A stretch of 63,946 nucleotides of DNA, the filler included, from Reticulomyxa filosa (Eukaryota > Protista > Foraminifera): the NCBI GenBank assembly GCA_000512085.1. It is 20 parts of 20 records of this genome, joined end to end, with 100 filler letters (N's around TTAATTAATTAA, not from the genome) between each part and the next. Parts side by side here need not be neighbours in the genome. Positions count along the whole stretch, not along the records: positions 27,887 to 38,337 come from ASPP01001874.1; 19 more parts are not named here. One strand, 5' to 3'. Position 1 is the stretch's first letter. Each line of letters begins with the position of its first letter. The position numbers were made by a program, and so were the translations under genes. Positions 27,424 through 38,337 of this stretch are shown piece by piece. Below the pieces are notes generated by a model. It was not told the DNA's origin, searched no databases, and saw only the letters and a list, made by a program, of their open reading frames with translations.

Positions 27424-30400
27424 TTAATCAAATGTTCAAGGGGATGAGTTTTATTTGCTTCCACAAATTTTGTGACGATTTGTTTGTGTTGATTGTTTTT
27501 CGATTATGACAGTTTTTTTGGATGTAACAAAAAAATACACAAAATGAAATAAACAACTTGAAAATGCAATATGCAGTGAATAATACTTTAATTTGTCAAA
27601 TGATGTTGATCTTGTGCATTGCAAAACAACTTTCTTACATTAATAACACAAGCTTTCCAGATATTTTTTCTAATTTCAAAATTTAACTTTTCCGAAATCA
27701 TTACGAAAACGACTGCATGTCTTCAATTTTTTGGTCACAGCCAATAATTAAATGAACACACGATTGTACCTATCATATGATAGATTNNNNNNNNNNNNNN
27801 NNNNNNNNNNNNNNNNNNNNNNNNNNNNNNTTAATTAATTAANNNNNNNNNNNNNNNNNNNNNNNNNNNNNNNNNNNNNNNNNNNNATATTTTAAAGATT
27901 AAATTAAAACTTTAATTTTTTTTTTCACTTGCTGTTGTTGATTGTGTGAGTTTTTGATATGCTTGTTCCTTTTGGGACGAAGTGCTCATTTTAACTTGTA
28001 TAAGATCTCATCCTTGATATAAAAAAAAATGTTGTTTTATTGGTTACTTTGTAATGTATTGTAGTTAAAAAATTTCTTTCTTTAAGTCTTGATGAACTTT
28101 CTTGGACAAAACGACGCTGGAATACTTGAATCAATTTTTTAAAATCTTCTTCAAAGCTTAAGAGATGTCGAATTATCTTAAGAAGGGTTACTTTTCATTC
28201 AATTTGTTTCGCTTTTGCTTCACACAAAAAAATATTTTCCTCGTTTGAATGTTTGCTTGTGTTCAAAAATTTCAAATGATAAAAAAAAACGTATTCTTCC
28301 ATATATCATCTAAATATCTCTTGTGTTGCAATAGGTATTTATTTGACGTGCCATTCGAATTTAAAATCTTGTTAGATATTTCTTACAGAAAATAAAAAAG
28401 CAAAAAGAAATATGATATCAAATTAAAAATGACATTAACAAGTGATCAGAAAAATGAAAAGAATCTGAATAATCACAATTTAAGACAATGGTATTTAATC
28501 GTCTTAATTAGATTCAGAATTATCACGATTAGAATCGTCTTCATAACACTTTCAGTCGTAAAAGAATGCGACATTAAACTAAACACCACAAAGCTCTAAT
28601 AATTTGAGACGCGTTCAACAGTGGGTGCTTTTGAAAGGTGTTAACAAGAAAAAAAGCACTTTCGCGACTACAATCGTTTTAGAGAGTTTTTTTATTTGAC
28701 GAAACCGTTTCCTCTTACTTTGCCCCACTATTTTTTCAAATTGCTTTCAAAAGGGGTTAGTTCCATTTTATTTTTTTTTACAGTAATGTTGTTCCCCAGG
28801 TAAGTAATCATACTTAATGCTTTTATTTTTTCTTTTGTCTTCATAACAAACAATATTGTTTAGTCTTGATTATTTATTTGACGGATGAAGACAATGAAAG
28901 TGATAAATAAAGTAAAAAAATTTTGACAAATAAAGAGTTGCATATAAGATTGGAAATTTGTATGTCATTGTTTGGTTAAAAAACGAATTTCAGAAATATT
29001 AAAGTAAAGATAAATTTTAGCAATATTTGCAAACAAAGTTACACATAATACGTGCGTTTTATGAGAAAAAAATAATACATTTTTACAAGCAAAACTTAAA
29101 TTCAGGACCAAATTCCACTTACCTCCCCTTAAAATAGATTTTACAATTTGTCACATACCAAGTAATCCAAATATATTATGCTTTTTACGCATTACTTTGC
29201 CAAATTATACCATTCACAGCAAATACAGCCCAGCGAAATTGTGTATATATTTTTTACAAAATAAAATTATTACATTTTGAAGAGTTTCACAAAAGGGTCT
29301 AGTTCCATTTTATTTTTTTTTATATCTGTCATCAGACTGTTCATTTAAGTAAATCCAGAAATGATGAAGCTAATGTTTAGAGTTTTTAGAATTAGAAGCA
29401 ATTGAATAAACATTTGTGCTGTTTTTGTCAAGTTTATTCTTATTATATTTCAAACCGCTATTTTTTAAAAGATAAATTCTATAATAACATGGGCTTGACC
29501 AATGTCGTACACATACCGTACAAAAAAAACGCGTGAAAATAGACCATAGATGCAATAGAATCGCTATTTTATTATTCGATAACGTGAATGATTGTATTTC
29601 CAATCCAACAAACTGATAAATTTTTGTTGCATGAAGAAAAATCATAATTTGTGATCTATCATTTGCTATATCCTGAAATGTTTGATCGTAGAAAAATAAG
29701 ATATTTTAATATAAATAATATTGAAAAATAAAAGTTATTTTTGTTTGTTTTCGTTTGTATGTGCACGGTAACTCGATCTTTTTTAATGGAAAAAAGATAG
29801 CACGCGATTTGGACACCTTTAAAAATTTCTCTCAGTAACAATTGACCGAATGAATCCGTAATTCCAAATCAACAAGATTCGACATGAAAGATAATGAGAT
29901 ATTATTGGCTGATGTACCAAAATAACGAACATTTGTTTGCTCAAAATCAGGCCCGTTTTGTGCGTCAATACAGTTTACAACACGTGTATTGTCACATTGA
30001 CCTTTTTATTAAAAAATAAAAATGGAATTATTTGATGAGAGAAATTGGCCGGTGTTGGATTTTATCAAATTAAGAAATTTCATGTTAATTATATAAAAGT
30101 GATTTTCTTTTTCCGCCTTGAAATTGAAACATTAACAAAAAAGGATTCGTTAAAAATTCCAAAAATTGTAAGTATTGCAATATGCATATGTATGTGTACT
30201 GACATGACGAATAATTATAAGATTTTTGTAGTCATCAACTTTCTGCTGTCCAACAACAAAAATGAGGTGACATAAAAACATTAAAAAAACAAGTATGGTA
30301 ATTGTTAATGAGACGACACACAACCAAAATTCATTGTTGACAATGATTATGTACACTTGTTGTTTCAGGTTCCGATGCCCAGAATCTCAATTGTACCGCT

Positions 30401-30498
30401 CAAATGGGCATTACTATGGCCCTCCGTTAACGAACTCGAAGCTTTTAATCTACTATTCATTGATCTTTAGATAATGAAAAATAATCATCCAACTTTTT

Positions 30499-33400
30499 TT
30501 ACAATTCTTCGTTTTGAAAAAAAGTTTCTTTGAGACACCGATTTTGACTCTTGGAAGTGACAGCAAAAGTTGTATTCTGGCTATAGTCACATGTATACTT
30601 TGTGAAGTTGGATGTATCAAAACTAGATTGGTTGTGATTTGGAAAAAAAGGATTTATCTTGGCTTCATTTCGATCTACGTTTGAAGTCACGTCACCACTC
30701 TGGACTTTCATTTGCAGTAATGGCCAAGATTGTCTTACCATTTGTTTGCACTGCAAGCATTCCCCAAAATGGCCAACTGTCGCCTCTTTGTCAAACGAAT
30801 AATATCCACAATAAGTCTTCTGTTTTCCAAAACAATTGATAAAACGAAGTTGCATTTTCAATTGTTCTTTGTTTATTTTTTTTCCCTTAGTAGCATCAAT
30901 GTGATAAAAATGGATGCGAGGAAATTGAGGAGAGCAAAACAAAATGGATAATAAACAAGCATATAAAAAGAAGGCATACATATTGTATTTGTCCATTTTT
31001 TAAAGGCTCAATTTCCAAAAGTAAGTTTCCCTTTTCATGTTTATCTCCAAGCGCTGTATTGAAATGAGTTGTAATTAAGCACAAATAGACAAGTCTTATT
31101 GAACAAAAAAATATAGAAATGCAAAAGCCAAAAAAAAACGTAACAGGGCAAGCGATTCCATGAATCGAATTTGTTACCCTTGTCAAGATCCGGCGTCATT
31201 TTTAGTAATTTGTGCATATATGGATCGCTTTTGATGATTTGAGTCATTGAGAGTACAAACAATCCATTGCAAAGTTTGCTATCATTTGCCGGGAAATTGG
31301 CATCATTGAATTGTCCACCATTCAATTTCGAAGATTTATATGCTGTATGTATATTGTCTTGTTTCGAAAAAGGATATGGGGATAATGCTGCCGAAAACAC
31401 ACTCGGGGCAATTGTAAAATCTCTTTCGCTACTAAAAAATCGCTGGTTTGTCGATATTTTTTCCATATCCGATAGCTTAGAGTGGGACATGGGATTTGTC
31501 AGGATTCTGCGTGTCTCGGCAATATCATCCCCATTGAGAGGATTTATATCGTTCATGATCATCAGAGGTGTACGGTAGTCGTCTTTCCATTGATTTGTTT
31601 TGCTCTCTCTTTTCTCATCACTGTCGTTTTCGTCGCTATTGTCCTCATTACTATCATCCTCATCACTGTCATCATCGTCATCTGTGTAGTCAATTTGCAT
31701 TTGATCCACTCTTTTTGTTCTACTTTGAGCCTGTTCTGAAGACATGATATCGTCTACTTGCGGAATATAGCACGACCATTTCATTATTTGTTTATCCATT
31801 GATTGGGTATATTTTGTTATTATTGTTATTGTTATTGTTATTGTTGTGAAAAAGATTTTTGTTTGACAAAGGCATTGCATTTTTGCACACGCATGTTATG
31901 CAAACTGTCAAAGCTTTTTAAAGCAGATGAAGAAAAACAATGGAATAGCTTTCCAGAAAGTATTGTGTCCCACCTTCCAAAACTTTTTCCGGCAAGGGCT
32001 TTTTATCACGCAATAATTTGAGGAAATAATCATGTGCATAAGAGCGCACTTGCTTCACAGTGCGTGTTGTACCCATGAACTTTACTATCTGAATCCAGAC
32101 AAGCACAAAATACAAAAAATTTTGTTTTTCATTTGCGTGATACCCGCGTGTACACGGGATTATATGTGTGTATATATTGTCTTGTTCCAAATCGTACAGA
32201 CCTTACGAAAATCTCTTCCAAATAAATGGAGCCCTTCAATCAATTTTGCACATTCGGTTTGATCCCAATGTGCCCACGAACACTAAAGAGAATGGACCAA
32301 GCATAAGCGTTGTCATTATTTTCAAAAGTAAGCAAATAAACAAAATACACAAAGCAAACCGAAGCGGATTTCTTTGCTCCCTTGGATTTTGTTGGTTTAA
32401 TGCATTTGCTTTTGACATCATTTTCATTTTCATTTTTGTTTTTGTTTTTGTTTTTGTTTTTATTATTCTTATTTTCGTTCGTATTTCTATTCTTATTTTT
32501 GTTTTTACGTTTGTTTCGACTGCGACTGCGACTGCAGCTATAACTGGAGCTGGGATCAGTGTGACAATTTTTACGATTTTTTGGTTTGTTACGTGGACGA
32601 CTTCTTTGCCAATTAGGGCTATTATCTGCATCTGGTATTTCATCACTGTCCGAAAGTTGTGAATAGAGTTTGTCGTGGAATGTATCCAGTGAATCGAAAT
32701 TGGAATGAGCACTTCCGTTGAGAGGATCCTCGGAATGAATAGAATTATTGAGAGGGGAACAAAAAGAGAGAATTGGGACAATGTCAGTAGAAATTTCAGG
32801 ATGGCAAGAGGGATGAAAAAAAGATGAAGAAGGAACAGGAATAACAATCCCATTCAAATGAATAAGTTCTTCCGAAATTCCTTCCCCAATGGCAAATTGA
32901 TGTTCGTGTATTTTTTGTTGTAAATAAAACTTGCCCAGTCCAAAGGAGGGCCGGGAACAAATATGACAAGGGCAGTGGGGCACATAAACATGTCCATCTT
33001 TGTCCGTTGTTGGTTTGCGTGGAAAGTATTGAAAAATCAATGGAGCATATTGATGTGCATCATGCAATGTCTCTGTGCAAATCACAAATCTTCGAACATA
33101 TTTCAAATCCATGAAAACACTTCGAATTGTTGAAAGCATTCGATTGGTGCATTCTCTATCCATTTGTTCAAAACGGGTTAATTCCAATCCAATTATATCA
33201 ATGGTCAAATCCATAGTTTGTTGAATATCAAGCAATCGCCGATTTATTTCAAGTAATTGACAATCTGTGAAATAATTACCCTTTGTTACCATCATTAACA
33301 CATTTTTGGGTCCTAAATATGTTTCTTCGGTATTCACAAAATATGTGTTCCCAATCTGTTTATTTCTCCATTCTTCTAGTTCCTCTTTGCCATTCAAGTT

Positions 33401-35606
33401 TTCTTCTCCACACAACAATTTCATTATATCTAGTCCTTGTGATACAAGTGCATCAATCAACTTTTTGCCACCCCGAGCCAGCAATCGTCCAATCAACCAA
33501 TCACTCTCATCCCCATTGTAACACAATGGAATTATTGCAACGTCCACACGCAACAATGTCAGGTCACATTGTCTAAATGTTTAGTCCCCATTGATATCCA
33601 AATCATATGTAGAGTGTATATGCATATATAATTTTCCCTTCAAAAAACAAAATCATAAATTGTGGGTTGTTTTCTGTTTTTTTATTTTAAGTAGTTGTAC
33701 CCAAAGGCTAAAATTCGATTGGCCGTTTCGTCGACAGTGTCTATAAGTGACAATGGTGGTTTTTTTGGCTTGAAAGTGAAATCCACAAATCCCCACGCTG
33801 TTATATCCAAAGGATGAATAATATCAAGATCTTGCGACTTTTCATCGAAATACACGCCTTTTACTATTTTTTTAATGTTATTTTGGTAATACATGCCTAT
33901 AATCATTTGTATTACTTTATTCATTATTTTCTGCAAACAAACAAAACTGAATTGTCCATAATACCTTCCACATGAGGGTTGAAATTGTTTGAACAGAACG
34001 GGCAAAGACTGCCATTTCAACAAAGTGAATCGATTGGGCTGTTGAACCAGTCGATAAATATAAACCATAACATGGACATGAGGCTCTCCTGAAAAGCCCG
34101 TATTGCCACCGTATCCAACCAACTGACCCGCTTTCACAAAATCGCCAATCGCTACCTTTTTGTATTATTGTTATTGTGAAAGACTAATGCAATTGTGTTA
34201 AAAAAAAAAGGGTAACAAACAACTCAAAAAAAAAACAAACTCGAATGGAGCGAAAGCGCAAATGCACCAAATCACAAAAACTGCCATCGCTGTGGAGAAT
34301 GGTGACGTAATTGCAGTACTCTTCATATTCTAATTCAGGCCCATGTTGCCATCGCTGTTGTTCAATGTCCACGACATAACCACTTCGAGGTGCAACGACA
34401 GGGGTCCCCACTGTCACTGCGAAATCGTAGCTATTGACATAAGATCCACACGCATGTGAAAAGGTACCTCCGGGTCCTTGAGAGCATAAAAATGAAAATC
34501 GGTGACGACATTGATATTTCTCCTTATCTCCATTACCATCATTTATTTGTTGTTGATCTTTGGAAGGCGAGCTTGACATACCCAGCACTTGTCGAATATC
34601 AAAGTCCAATGCAAAAGGTAATAAATATTCATATTTCGAATCGTGTCGGGCCAACACATTGACTTTGCTATAGAATTGCAGTTTTGGAAATGTTGCTTTG
34701 TCTTCGTCACCAATTATTGCCCTCTGTTTTTTTTGTGTTTTGTTCTGTTTTTTAATTGGTTTCGAAATATACAACAAATCGAAAAAAGAGTGTATTTCAA
34801 TGGAGTTGCATTGGATTTGAAATATATATAACATTGTCCTTTCGAGTTAATTTGCAAATGCAAATGGCTTTCATTTGATCCAACTGACAAGTGGACTGTG
34901 GAAATAATACGACAATAACTGAGTCCTCACATCCCCATTGAAGACATTGCTCCACTTCTGTCGTCCAATGGCAATCATAGATCTCATTGTCAAACTCCAT
35001 TCGAACTGACATTGGCGCGTAATTACTTGTGTTTATTGCCCATGCTTCCAAAGGGCCAGTCGAAGGAAGGTATACCCAAACATCATCTTTTTTTTTGTAA
35101 AACGTGACACTCAATCAAAAAGCACCTTGTTTCTTTTTTTTTCGCAAAAAAAAATTCAATGACTTTTGCAATTTATTAGCCTTACCATATAATGATTCAA
35201 TAACCACTGACAACTCAAAGTCTTCCAATTTTTCTCCATGGAAGCGCTTCTTACATCTCAGTGCTGCTCCACTGTCGTTAAATCGTATGTTTGCATGACA
35301 TGTACTTCTTCCTGTTTCTAAATCTCGATTGCTGTCACTCTTCAACTCCAATGTGTGTCTTCCTATTTCACTTAGTTGCTGTGACAATGTGCTTGAACGC
35401 GTGTGCCCTGGCAAACCCTTTATTGTCACTTGTGGTCTTGCTTCTTCATTTCCTGTGTTTGCAATATAGACATGCCCTTTTTTACTCTTGTTTGCTTTTG
35501 TCTTTCGTACTCAGTAATAAAATCATACAAAAATGAAACAAATGTTTCAAGTAGTGACAATTTACTGACTGCAAAAAAGAGCTCGTCTCGAGGATTGTGA
35601 GGGCAT
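30499..35606 (-). CDS. Multidomain protein: RRM + M23 metallopeptidase + degenerate macro domain + SHAQKYF-like Myb
   Basis: Phase-compatible GT-AG introns at 35569-35477, 35185-~35087, 34832-34724, 34240-34156, 33700-33573, 32359-32283, 32201-~32089 and further 3'. M23 motifs SQG..G.FSH..YDF..GTPVVAPRSG, HSDG..VHL, GNTGFSGEPHVH. Macro-like GQCDLTLLRVDVAII...QYFP. Myb WDQTECAKLIEGLHLFGRDFRK|IVKFMGTTRTVKQVRSYAHDYF. Needs one added G in a G-run near 31969. Confidence 0.72.
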
Positions 35607-36662
35607 CAAATCGCATATATACCAATAAGTAAAGGAAGGGAAAAATTATATTAAAATGTCCGTCAAAAGGAACTTTAAAAGTTACTTTAACTCGAATTTT
35701 TTGTCAAGATAAATAATTCTCACAAAGACAAAATTTCCTTACTTTTCATAATCAATTTCACAAAACAAAAACATTTTGGAGATAGCCACTTCGCGTATTA
35801 ATTTTTGTAATAAAATTTCTGATTCTCCCATTTTAACTACAATTGCTTACAATTTTAGAAGAGTTTCAAAAACCCATTCTTTTAAATGGAATCCTTTGTT
35901 TTTTTGCCACTTTGCCTAAAACAGCAATTAAAAATTCATTTTAGTATCCATTTAAAAAGTCATTAATTTATGCAAAAAGAAAAATAAATCTTGAGGGCTT
36001 TGATTTTATGTTAAAAATTCACACGAAACAGCTGACTAAACACTGTCCCAATGGACTTCTGAGAAAAAACATTTCTTTAAAATAAAGGTCTTTGTGAAAA
36101 AAAAATCAACAATGTAATCATTTCAAAATTTATAATGGGTCTCTGAATAATATCTGCAGATAAAGGCCTGTCACCACTTTCATACGTTCCACCTGAAATT
36201 TTAAACAAACAAAAAAAGGGGGTTTGAGTATAAATAATAAGAGAGAACAATATAGCAGAAAATGACTAAACAAATCAACTCAATGAAAAAGCATTTCTCT
36301 TCTTTATCTAACAGTTGCTGTTCAATATTTTTTATGTGGTCGCTTTTGATTATGTCCCCTCAATTTGTGTTTTGATTTTGTGTTCGGCACGTTTAGTCGT
36401 GCAATTTATTGAGCATCTAAAATTTATTAGGAAAGTGCTATCAATAAATGGTAAGTACGAGCATGGGCCGGAAGCGTAGCAATATATTGAATAAATGTAG
36501 CGCTGCTGTCTTTAGACAGAGATATCAAATATAAAAAACTGAAACAAGACAAAACTACAAAAAAAAGATGTTATTATATATCTCGTTCTTCTGAAAAGTT
36601 TTTGCGTCCTGTAGGGACATTCTTGACCGCATGATATTTTTTTAAAAGAAAAGCTTGCTTCA

Positions 36663-38337
36663 TCAATTAAATGTAGTCGCTGTTTGCGACAATCCCAATC
36701 CGTACATAACAGCAGGGATTTTCATGACTTGCACAGTGGTGCCAGTGGCATACAAACTTATGTGAGGAACAAAAGACATGTTTGCATATTTTTTGAATGT
36801 AAGAGAGTTTTTCAAAACATATTCAGAGCCGTTGCCACTTTCGGTGACCTGTTTCCATTTCAGTTCTTTTTTGTCAACGTGAAAATACATGTCAACAGTA
36901 CATTCGCGTAAGTGCCTCCAATCTAATGGAGATTCAAACACTTCAATCAAATTGGAGTCATTCATCTCTCCATTGCCTTGCCAGCCCCACACTATTCAAA
37001 AAATTAATTAATTTTTTTAATTAATATTTGTTTTGTTTTATTGCATTATGTTTGTCAAGATACACTTAACATTCTTTTTCAAGATATGAATTTGGGCTAA
37101 ATTTTTTTTTCCCATTGGCCACTCCGAGCATCAACAAATTGATTTGTCCTTGCTCATTACGTATCTTTTTTTGTATAGTATGTACACACATACATATACA
37201 TATATATTGTAATTTGTGTAATATACAAACAAACAAACTTTAAATCGCCAACAGTGCCGCCCTTGTAAAACCGCATAACAAATGGGTAACGAAATACTGA
37301 CTCGACTAAACACTCCAATTCCATAAACTCGACGAACGAGGGAGTTGTTATTTTCCAACTGAATGTCTTTGAAATTGAATATACGATCCGCACTGAAAGA
37401 CAGCAACGAACAAGGGCCTTTCGAATAGGAAGGTAAAGAGGGGGGAGGAAGGAGACATTGTAGAGCCACGACTAGTTATATCCCACGCATACATATATCT
37501 CAAAACAATTAAAAAAAAACAAACAAATAAAATAAGTAACAAAACTTGTTTGTGCAATGATGGTATTGGAATAAGGGGATTGACAATGCTCAAAAGAAGT
37601 GTGCACAGGTTTAATGCGAATTGCATAAAAACACCCCATTTCCAAATCTTCGACACAATGTTCCCATCTGTGATTTTGTGATTTGGTTACTTGGATTGGA
37701 CTCCATTTCTCATCCTCGCTGGTGACGTTGCACTCTGCACTTTTCACTTTGCGATATTCTATCAAAAATGAATCCGCATTTAGCATTTCATTGTACGGAC
37801 GACTTATTTTGCCCTTTTCATTTTCCCACTCTATCGTTATATTGTCAGTGCTGGCGCTTTTCAACGATACCTTCACTCCATTCATTTCATAAGCACCAAC
37901 CTTGCCGCATCTAGCTATTTCCTTTTTTTTTATTATAAAAAAAAAAAATATAATAATAAAGTAAGTCTTTATTACAACATGCATGTGTATACGTATATGC
38001 GTACGTGTATCATTTATATGTGTAGGTTGTGCATGTGCGTGTAGTATATATGTGCACGTATAATTAATATAGCACGTAATGTGCATGTGTGTTGATGAAA
38101 TAACTAGTTCACTTTTTTGATTGGGTAAAAATAAAATTTGTGGAAATTGAGCGACAAAATTCGAAGCATAGGTTTGCTCATACTCTTTGATTTGAGAATT
38201 GCAAAGTTGCATAATTTCGGTTTTTCGATCGCTCAGCTTTAATGTTTTGTCCTGCAGTAATTCGTCAACTTTATCTCGACACTTTTTTTTTTTTTTGAGG
38301 AAGATGGAGTCCCTTTTCTCTGTCGATAATGAAAATA
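36663..38337 (-). CDS. Coiled-coil + fibronectin type III + SPRY/B30.2-like protein (5' truncated)
   Basis: FN3 pattern ITIEW...FLIEY...VEDLEMGCFYAIRIK..SPYS. SPRY-like GRHCWRFKV..LMLGV..VDMYFHVDKKELKW..FVPHISLY. Multi-exon. Confidence 0.7.

Follow-up and report, generated by a model that had tools for sequence, protein, structure and literature searches.

Here we describe a gene of the foraminiferan Reticulomyxa filosa in which an RRM, a peptidase of the M23 family and a macro-like domain are encoded one after another. The stretch of DNA that was analysed, which we call the window, is 63,946 nucleotides (nt) long, filler included, and the piece under study is window 27887-38337, 10,451 nt of contig ASPP01001874.1; the gene lies on the minus strand of the window. 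We read it as one intron-containing gene that belongs to a family conserved in foraminifera, and give this reading a probability of roughly 0.72. The core of the protein runs from a short N-terminus without signal peptide through the RRM, a beta-rich domain, the M23 peptidase, a degenerate macro domain and an H-C-P-C-x-x-C motif to a basic R/K/S-rich tail. The individual domains are known; their combination, and the intracellular setting of an M23 enzyme, are new, and a search of the literature found no description of an RRM-M23-macro family. A preliminary description of the piece had named four domains, RRM, M23, macro and Myb, and all four do lie on the minus strand, close to where they had been placed.

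The foraminiferal family and its domains

Minus-strand open reading frame (ORF) pieces were scanned separately, and searches were run exon by exon or with database proteins. The NCBI model of the R. filosa gene, ETO35188.1 (X6PAN0_RETFI, here P0003), has 987 residues, spans 35831-32240 and is named only "peptidase". An exhaustive phmmer search with the macro-like region returned P0003 and three relatives, and two more came from a profile search; when the macro alignment served as the profile, P0006 alone was recovered, and a scan of JGI metagenomes found no relative.

One relative, P0004, is a protein of 1040 residues encoded by a single intronless ORF of 3123 nt (L003:5014-8136) on an 8-kb ENA metagenome scaffold, BOEU19-1_SAMN09765692_METAG-scaffold_3143 (L003). 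It consists of an RRM-like N-terminus, a beta-rich extension, the M23 domain, the macro-like domain, H-C-P-C-x-x-C and a basic tail, and is collinear with window 35453-32837. On the M23 tree described below it is sister to Bolivina argentea, so the scaffold is probably foraminiferal. A B. argentea transcriptome protein from EukProt (P0008) has the RRM, the extension and the M23 domain, while a Tara Oceans MERC transcript-derived protein (P0005) covers the end of the M23 domain, the macro-like domain and a tail of 250 residues. Two intron-bearing genomic copies, one on a Logan contig (L001) and one on an ENA contig (L005), have the same domain order; L001 is collinear with the window, and basic R/K/S-rich tails stand at the same position in P0004 and P0005. 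Because the order is the same in the P0004 ORF, P0008, P0005, L001 and L005, we conclude from these comparisons that RRM, M23 and macro are one gene of a small family conserved in foraminifera. The fusion had been proposed in the preliminary description, and with five relatives sharing the order the two readings set against it there, separate genes divided at the stop at 33682 and a chimeric contig, are removed.

On the metagenome scaffold the neighbours of the family gene encode Band_7, DUF92 and Abhydrolase_2 domains. The relatives extend 230-300 residues past their basic tails. In L001 (L001:2659-3582) and P0005 (P0005:380-630) the basic tail is followed by a K/E/Q/N-rich segment that looks like a coiled coil; these tails are unlike the Myb and acidic region of R. 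filosa, and the C-terminal halves of the family have strongly diverged.

Pfam Peptidase_M23 (PF01551) is split over two ORF pieces, 34184-34834 (22.7 bits) and 33682-34137 (17.4 bits), an intron dividing the domain; intron-free versions score 56.1 bits in P0003, 51.3 in P0004 and 53.6 in P0008 (cutoff 28.7). In an alignment of ten sequences, four foraminiferal and six bacterial (A4), the H of F-S-H, the D of Y-D-F, the H of I-L-H, the H of V-H-L and P-H-x-H are invariant. The first histidine lies 9-10 residues before the aspartate, as in the bacterial subgroup discussed below, the textbook form being H-x-x-x-D (a spacing read from the sequence). With every zinc and catalytic residue preserved, this domain is probably an active intracellular peptidase.

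Both structure models, of the M23 module and of the macro region, were built on shallow alignments. The M23 core reaches a predicted local distance difference test score (pLDDT) of 62-87, and its top Foldseek matches are Csd1/Csd2, ShyA, lysostaphin, EnpA and LytM (E 2e-7 to 5e-6); the model of the N-terminal beta-rich extension is poor, with pLDDT below 35. This extension had earlier been called bacterial in style, rightly, as secreted bacterial homologues share its H-D...Y-x-L-P-F motif and the region upstream.

The bacterial relatives of the module are proteins of 270-460 residues with signal-peptide-like N-termini, and relatives at 30-42% identity are encoded at 439 bacterial loci among GTDB representatives. 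A quick maximum-likelihood search on 124 columns gave a tree in which the five foraminiferal sequences group as one clade (Shimodaira-Hasegawa-like approximate likelihood ratio test, SH-aLRT, 99) inside a bacterial subgroup (96) with members from Bacteroidota, Myxococcota, Verrucomicrobiota and Pseudomonadota. The position of one foraminiferal clade within a subgroup of secreted bacterial M23 enzymes speaks for one acquisition event, in which the beta-domain and M23 module would have been taken from that subgroup and the signal peptide replaced by the RRM. The N-termini of P0004 and P0008 have no signal peptide by eye.

The macro-like domain is recognized by its fold. Pfam Macro (PF01661) gave no match at E up to 10 in any of four family members, and a PDB sequence search with the region (~33572-32900) was blank; a four-sequence profile (A3) had a single PDB match at E up to 10, the PARP9 macro domain (E 0.23). 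An AlphaFold model of the region (m40f2613dc696) has a mean pLDDT of 55.7, with 65-78 in the core. Its top Foldseek match is GDAP2 (4uml, E 4.6e-7), followed by MacroD1, macroH2A, MacroD2 and YmdB, and in VIA-align 150-179 residues align with Z 11-12 and a root-mean-square deviation of 3-4 A. The preliminary assignment to a GDAP2/MacroD-like macro domain was therefore right at the level of fold.

Aligned with E. coli YmdB, the family keeps the D-V-I-I-V-P...R-R-G-G-x-K-L strand-helix pattern, the L-P-C-K-K strand and a C-terminal F-P-R. In MacroD and YmdB the ADP-ribose pocket is formed by loops 1 and 2. In all family members the same alignment has P-L-x...[KND]-[HND]-W-L-x in place of loop 1 (N-x6-G-G-G-x-D) and E-L-[PT]-x-[FH] in place of loop 2 (G-[VI]-[YF]-G). 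Since both pocket loops are replaced, canonical ADP-ribose binding or hydrolysis by this domain is unlikely, and the earlier view of it as an ADP-ribose binder is not supported. Right after the macro fold, the string Y-x-x-H-C-P-C-x-x-C followed by G-L-G (window 32940-32990) is invariant in R. filosa, P0004, P0005 and L001/P0006. H-C-P-C-x-x-C may be a small zinc-binding element without family assignment.

At the N-terminus, the ORF piece 35115-35429 scores 25.8 bits with Pfam RRM_1 (PF00076; cutoff 20.7). The corresponding part of P0008 (P0008:15-115) is also above threshold at 23.0 bits, and P0004 and L001 are below it. The stretch K-x-K-[KR]-G...N-x-G-x-E and an L-P-G motif align with P0008 and P0004.

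Exon structure and the 3′ extent of the gene

The exons, introns and further features that we read in the piece, from the 5′ end of the gene onwards, are these.

35743-35831, minus strand: candidate first exon a, the start of the NCBI model (ATG 35831; donor AA/GTAAGG at 35743/35742, phase 2)
35566-35616, minus strand: candidate first exon b, read from the sequence (ATG 35616; 17 codons; donor TCA/GTAAAT, phase 0)
35186-35501, minus strand: RRM exon, coding at least from ~35501/35484 to donor G/GTAAGG at 35186/35185
35087-35185, minus strand: intron 1, 99 nt, phase 1, GTAAGG...AAAAAG; shared in position and phase by an intron of L001
34833-35086, minus strand: exon for the beta-rich N-terminal extension of the M23 module (tblastn against L001, E 8e-12; aligns with secreted bacterial homologues)
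34745-34832, minus strand: intron 2, 88 nt, phase 0, GTTATA...AAACAG; the ORF is continuous there in L001 and P0004
34241-34744, minus strand: exon with the Y-L-L-P-F-A-L-D motif, a low-complexity insert and the first M23 half (Pfam M23; 57% identity to P0001)
34156-34240, minus strand: intron 3, inside the M23 domain, 85 nt, phase 0, GTTTGT...AAAAAG
33948-34155, minus strand: second M23 half, with G-N-T-G-F-S-G-E-P-H-V-H (HxH motif) and W-Q-S-x-P (Pfam, alignment A4, M23 fold)
33864-33947, minus strand: intron 4, preferred version 84 nt, phase 1, acceptor 33864/33863 (NCBI acceptor 33897/33896)
33701-33863, minus strand: exon linking M23 to macro, W-x-x-x-D and N-x-x-L region; aligns with P0004, P0005 and P0006
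33573-33700, minus strand: intron 5, 128 nt, phase 2, GG/GTACAA...TTTAG/A; contiguous in P0004, P0005 and P0006
32900-33572, minus strand: degenerate macro domain, then the H-C-P-C-x-x-C and G-L-G motifs (structure model; family alignment)
32360-32899, minus strand: disordered linker, S/P-rich and then basic K/N/R/S-rich, with S-R-S-R-S-R and N-K repeats; ends at donor TCG/GTTTGC
32283-32359, minus strand: proposed intron 6, 77 nt, phase 0, GTTTGC...CTTTAG (splice-phase logic)
32202-32282, minus strand: Myb exon A, 27 codons, helices 1-2
32089-32201, minus strand: intron 7, inside the Myb domain, 113 nt, phase 0, GTCTGT...ATTCAG
31918-32088, minus strand: Myb exon B, helix 3; its end is either the stop at 31918 or a splice donor, G/GTGGGA (31974/31973)
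31041-31757, minus strand: acidic D/E/S-rich ORF, a separate 279-residue protein in NCBI; acceptor 31757/31756 is phase-compatible with the 31974 donor, and there is an ATG of its own at ~31746
30748-30834, minus strand: C-x12-H-x3-C-x2-C motif in ORF 30499-30996, a separate 160-residue protein in NCBI

The first five splice junctions are backed by homologues that read across them without interruption. P0004 and P0008 are continuous at the intron 1 junction as ...H-[HN]-D-D-x-W, and the M23 domain is uninterrupted at the position of intron 3 in L001, P0004, P0008 and P0009; the exon before that intron carries the F-S-H and Y-D-F zinc ligands together with I-L-H and V-H-L. The longer version of intron 4 drops 11 residues that are not present in P0004, P0005 or P0006 and restores the ...F-I-K-G-V-Y-F-D... 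match to P0005. The GT-AG introns that had been placed at 35185, 33700 and 32359 begin at those positions with compatible phases, and the junction given as ILAFG/QCDL is intron 5, where the homologues are contiguous.

Downstream of the TGA at 35513-35511 the RRM exon offers no in-frame ATG, and it must therefore be preceded by another exon. Candidate a, whose phase fits only the acceptor at 35485/35484, is not conserved in P0004 or P0008; candidate b is the alternative to it and fits the acceptors at 35502/35501 or 35487/35486.

Read against this exon structure, ETO35188.1 contains four or more errors, which affect its two ends and two splice sites in between. It loses the RNP2 half of the RRM to splicing and keeps about 20 residues of intron 1; its acceptor for intron 4, at 33897, is probably an error; and it reads through intron 6 to the stop at 32240, which adds 39 intron-like residues and misses the Myb. 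These errors matter to users of the R. filosa proteome.

We lean towards the view that two 3′ exons add a Myb of the SHAQKYF class to the R. filosa peptidase gene. The only PDB match of Myb exon A (32282-32202) is the SHAQKYF-family Myb 6nvz_A, at residues 11-32 (E 0.12), and the top PDB match of Myb exon B (32088-31921) is the same protein at residues 35-57 (E 0.043). Exon A matches Pfam Myb_DNA-bind_7 at E 0.037, exon B matches Pfam Myb_DNA-binding (PF00249) at E 0.02-0.1, a partial Myb match falls on the ORF piece 31918-32190, and TIGR01557 scores 13 bits against a cutoff of 29.3; each exon alone is below the Pfam or TIGR threshold. Because two separate searches land on adjacent, collinear parts of the 60-residue 6nvz_A, we regard intron 7 as validated. 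At the SHAQKYF position exon B reads S-Y-A-H-D-Y-F, and the SHAQKYF-like Myb of the preliminary description is supported by the adjacent matches of the two exons.

Myb exon A lacks an ATG, and an in-frame TAG immediately precedes it; it must therefore be spliced to an upstream exon. On the minus strand no coding sequence lies upstream of it other than the basic linker of the peptidase gene. The 32360/32282 junction is in phase 0, the donor there, GTTTGC, is similar to GTTTGT, the validated donor of intron 3, and the join would set a lysine-rich arm before the first Trp, an arrangement usual in SHAQKYF Mybs.

Several points weigh against a single gene of this extent and composition. None of the five relatives has a Myb, and L001, L003 and L005 gave no tblastn match to the Myb, acidic or C-terminal pieces. 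The L003 scaffold ends 38 nt after the P0004 stop, and a possible terminal intron there leads to no Myb within the remaining 38 nt. NCBI lists the acidic ORF, which has its own ATG, and the last ORF as separate genes. At the 5′ end there are two phase-compatible candidates for the first exon. RNA binding by the RRM is not assured, as by eye RNP2 reads [IV]-[TLS]-[IM]-x-[GN]-L-P and RNP1 reads C-[HR]-A-x-I-[RK]-[FC], with the usual aromatics mostly missing. The macro model, built on four sequences, is of moderate confidence, and the M23 tree does not name the donor lineage.

The absence of a Myb from the relatives, the separate downstream genes of the NCBI annotation and the ATG of the acidic ORF are what one would expect if there were two or more genes here, the peptidase ending at ~32240 or nearby and the Myb exons forming part of another transcript downstream, which might also include the acidic ORF. 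We consider this unlikely. Myb exon A needs an upstream exon and only the basic linker is there, in phase 0 and with an intron-3-like donor; the NCBI 3′ end consists of 39 residues of intron-like read-through; and the relatives extend long past the basic tail, a point soon after which the NCBI model already ends.

Under the single-gene reading, which we prefer, the acidic region and a C-H-C-C knuckle possibly follow the Myb in the same gene. The donor at 31974/31973 and the acceptor at 31757/31756 would connect the Myb and the acidic ORF in one frame without any sequence error. This splice is a candidate alternative to the G-run indel that had been suggested near the Myb end, and the indel is not adopted. 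The acidic ORF has no family match and no usable ESM Atlas match. The C-x12-H-x3-C-x2-C motif occurs once in six frames of the piece, where 0.075 occurrences are expected in a scan with a C-to-H spacing of 10-22, the motif having been defined after it was seen. The end of P0005 carries this motif with identical spacing, and in the L001 tail (L001:3440-3560) it takes the form C-x20-H-x3-C-x2-C; BLASTP of the P0005 and L001 tails against the downstream ORFs of the window was not significant. That the gene reaches ~30750 is thus suggested by the shared motif as a weak lead. An upstream [IV]-N-C is also common to the C-H-C-C regions of the last R. filosa ORF and the relatives.

NCBI places other hypothetical proteins on the piece at 38281-36663, 31880-31041 and 30981-30499. 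The G+C content (GC) is 33-39% over the gene against 26-30% in the flanks. A search with NCBIfam gave nothing significant and Rfam gave no matches; the tandem repeats found are short coding microsatellites only, e.g. the hexamer repeat at 32433-32461. The upstream neighbour gene (36663-38281, minus strand), a 412-residue NCBI model, contains low-complexity H/T-rich sequence and, on 37472-38212, only a weak fibronectin type III match (E 0.02). On the other side, window 27887-30400, ~2.5 kb at 26-30% GC, is apparently intergenic, with no ORF with a family match, no Rfam match and no tandem repeat.

Possible function

For the function we can offer a tentative account, itself rather doubtful as a whole. 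The M23 domain would act as a zinc endopeptidase inside the cell. The RRM and the basic tail, which is R/K/S-rich with S-R-S-R-S-R runs and resembles the tail of a serine/arginine-rich (SR) protein or a nuclear localisation signal, would tether the enzyme to RNA, ribonucleoprotein (RNP) or chromatin, helped in R. filosa by the Myb. Because both ADP-ribose loops are lost, the macro-like domain would probably be a scaffold or bind another ligand. Candidate substrates are an imported muropeptide or an endogenous Gly-rich protein. As the Myb is absent from all relatives, DNA binding is not the core function of the family.

A more specific version is improbable as it stands. It would have an active M23 enzyme, domesticated early and bound in the nucleus or to RNP, that cleaves endogenous Gly-rich RNA-binding proteins or senses imported muropeptides, and that in R. 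filosa acts on DNA through the Myb. The preliminary description had suggested an intracellular sensor or regulator that may couple muropeptides to gene regulation; in such a model a cytosolic or nuclear protein would recognize or cleave bacterial muropeptides through the M23 domain and pass the signal on through Myb and RRM. Foraminifera feed on bacteria, the M23 active site is intact with bacterial cell-wall-type M23 enzymes as nearest relatives, and nucleic-acid-binding domains share the protein with it in the absence of a signal peptide. However, the Myb, being missing from every relative, is not central to the function of the family, the macro domain is without its ADP-ribose loops, and peptidoglycan is normally digested in phagolysosomes, which the protein has no signal to reach. 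We therefore regard the sensor, too, as improbable. If the version with muropeptides and Myb were true, one protein would link bacterial cell-wall fragments to transcription, a link with no known counterpart.

Slightly less probable still is a non-catalytic role, in which the M23 domain would be a binding module in an RNA-processing scaffold, like LECT2 or the LytM factors of the EnvC/NlpD type. Degenerate LytM domains are common, the adjoining macro domain is degenerate too, and the layout of an RRM with a basic R/S tail is that of an SR protein; but the zinc ligands and catalytic His are invariant between R. filosa, Bolivina and the bacterial relatives, which argues for retained catalysis. 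A false fusion through bacterial contamination or chimeric assembly is rejected, despite the clearly bacterial type of the M23 module, in view of a spliceosomal intron inside the M23 domain, the GC of 33-39% throughout the gene and the recurrence of the fusion in five independent sources, of which two are transcript-derived proteins and one is a continuous ORF.

Comparison with known systems

The closest known counterparts of the peptidase are secreted bacterial M23 enzymes of the LytM/lysostaphin type, in a subgroup marked by G-T-F-S-H ... Y-x-[VI]-D-F. Core identity is 35-46%, with the same zinc and catalytic residues, and the H-D...Y-x-L-P-F motif, the upstream beta-rich extension and the M23 fold are common to both. 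Examples are the proteins P0002 and P0010-P0013 and Pseudomonas, Bacteroidota and Myxococcota loci (L006-L033). The bacterial proteins, at 270-460 residues, have signal peptides and no further domains, whereas in the foraminiferal proteins an RRM takes the place of the signal peptide, low-complexity sequence is inserted ahead of the core, and a macro domain, a basic tail and spliceosomal introns are present.

The macro-like domain has the same three-layer alpha/beta/alpha fold as GDAP2, MacroD1-2 and YmdB (Foldseek E 5e-7 to 1e-4, Z 11-12), and its end resembles the C-terminal ...F-x-C...Y...F-P-R of MacroD and GDAP2. It differs from them in having no Pfam Macro match, in its replaced loops and in the family-specific H-C-P-C-x-x-C that follows. 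The R. filosa Myb shares with single-repeat SHAQKYF Mybs (PDB 6nvz; the SANT domain of human KIAA1915, PDB 2cu7) a basic stretch before the first Trp; it differs in reading S-Y-A-H-D-Y-F and, if the splice model is right, in being attached to a peptidase and not to the body of a transcription factor. SR-type RNA-binding proteins likewise combine an N-terminal RRM with a C-terminal R/K/S-rich tail containing S-R-S-R-S-R. In the foraminiferal proteins, however, ~700 residues of enzyme and macro domain stand between the two, the RNP aromatics are not conserved and there are no true long arginine/serine repeats.

Bacterial cell-wall hydrolases have been domesticated in eukaryotes before, as in the dae/Tae amidases of ticks and the transfers of GH25 lysozymes. 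There, as here, a gene of bacterial peptidoglycan-hydrolase type was acquired and retained under selection. Those proteins are secreted, single-domain and antibacterial, whereas the foraminiferal protein has no signal peptide and is fused to RNA- or DNA-binding and macro domains. To our knowledge, every bacterial cell-wall hydrolase so far described as acquired by a eukaryote is a secreted single-domain antibacterial effector. The architecture described here would imply an intracellular, nucleic-acid-associated role for an M23 peptidase, for which we found no precedent in the literature, and the active site has been kept across deeply diverged foraminifera, the monothalamid Reticulomyxa and the rotaliid Bolivina. 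In a group where functional genetics hardly exists, the family is a clean, testable example of a transferred gene that then underwent domain fusion and a change of function.

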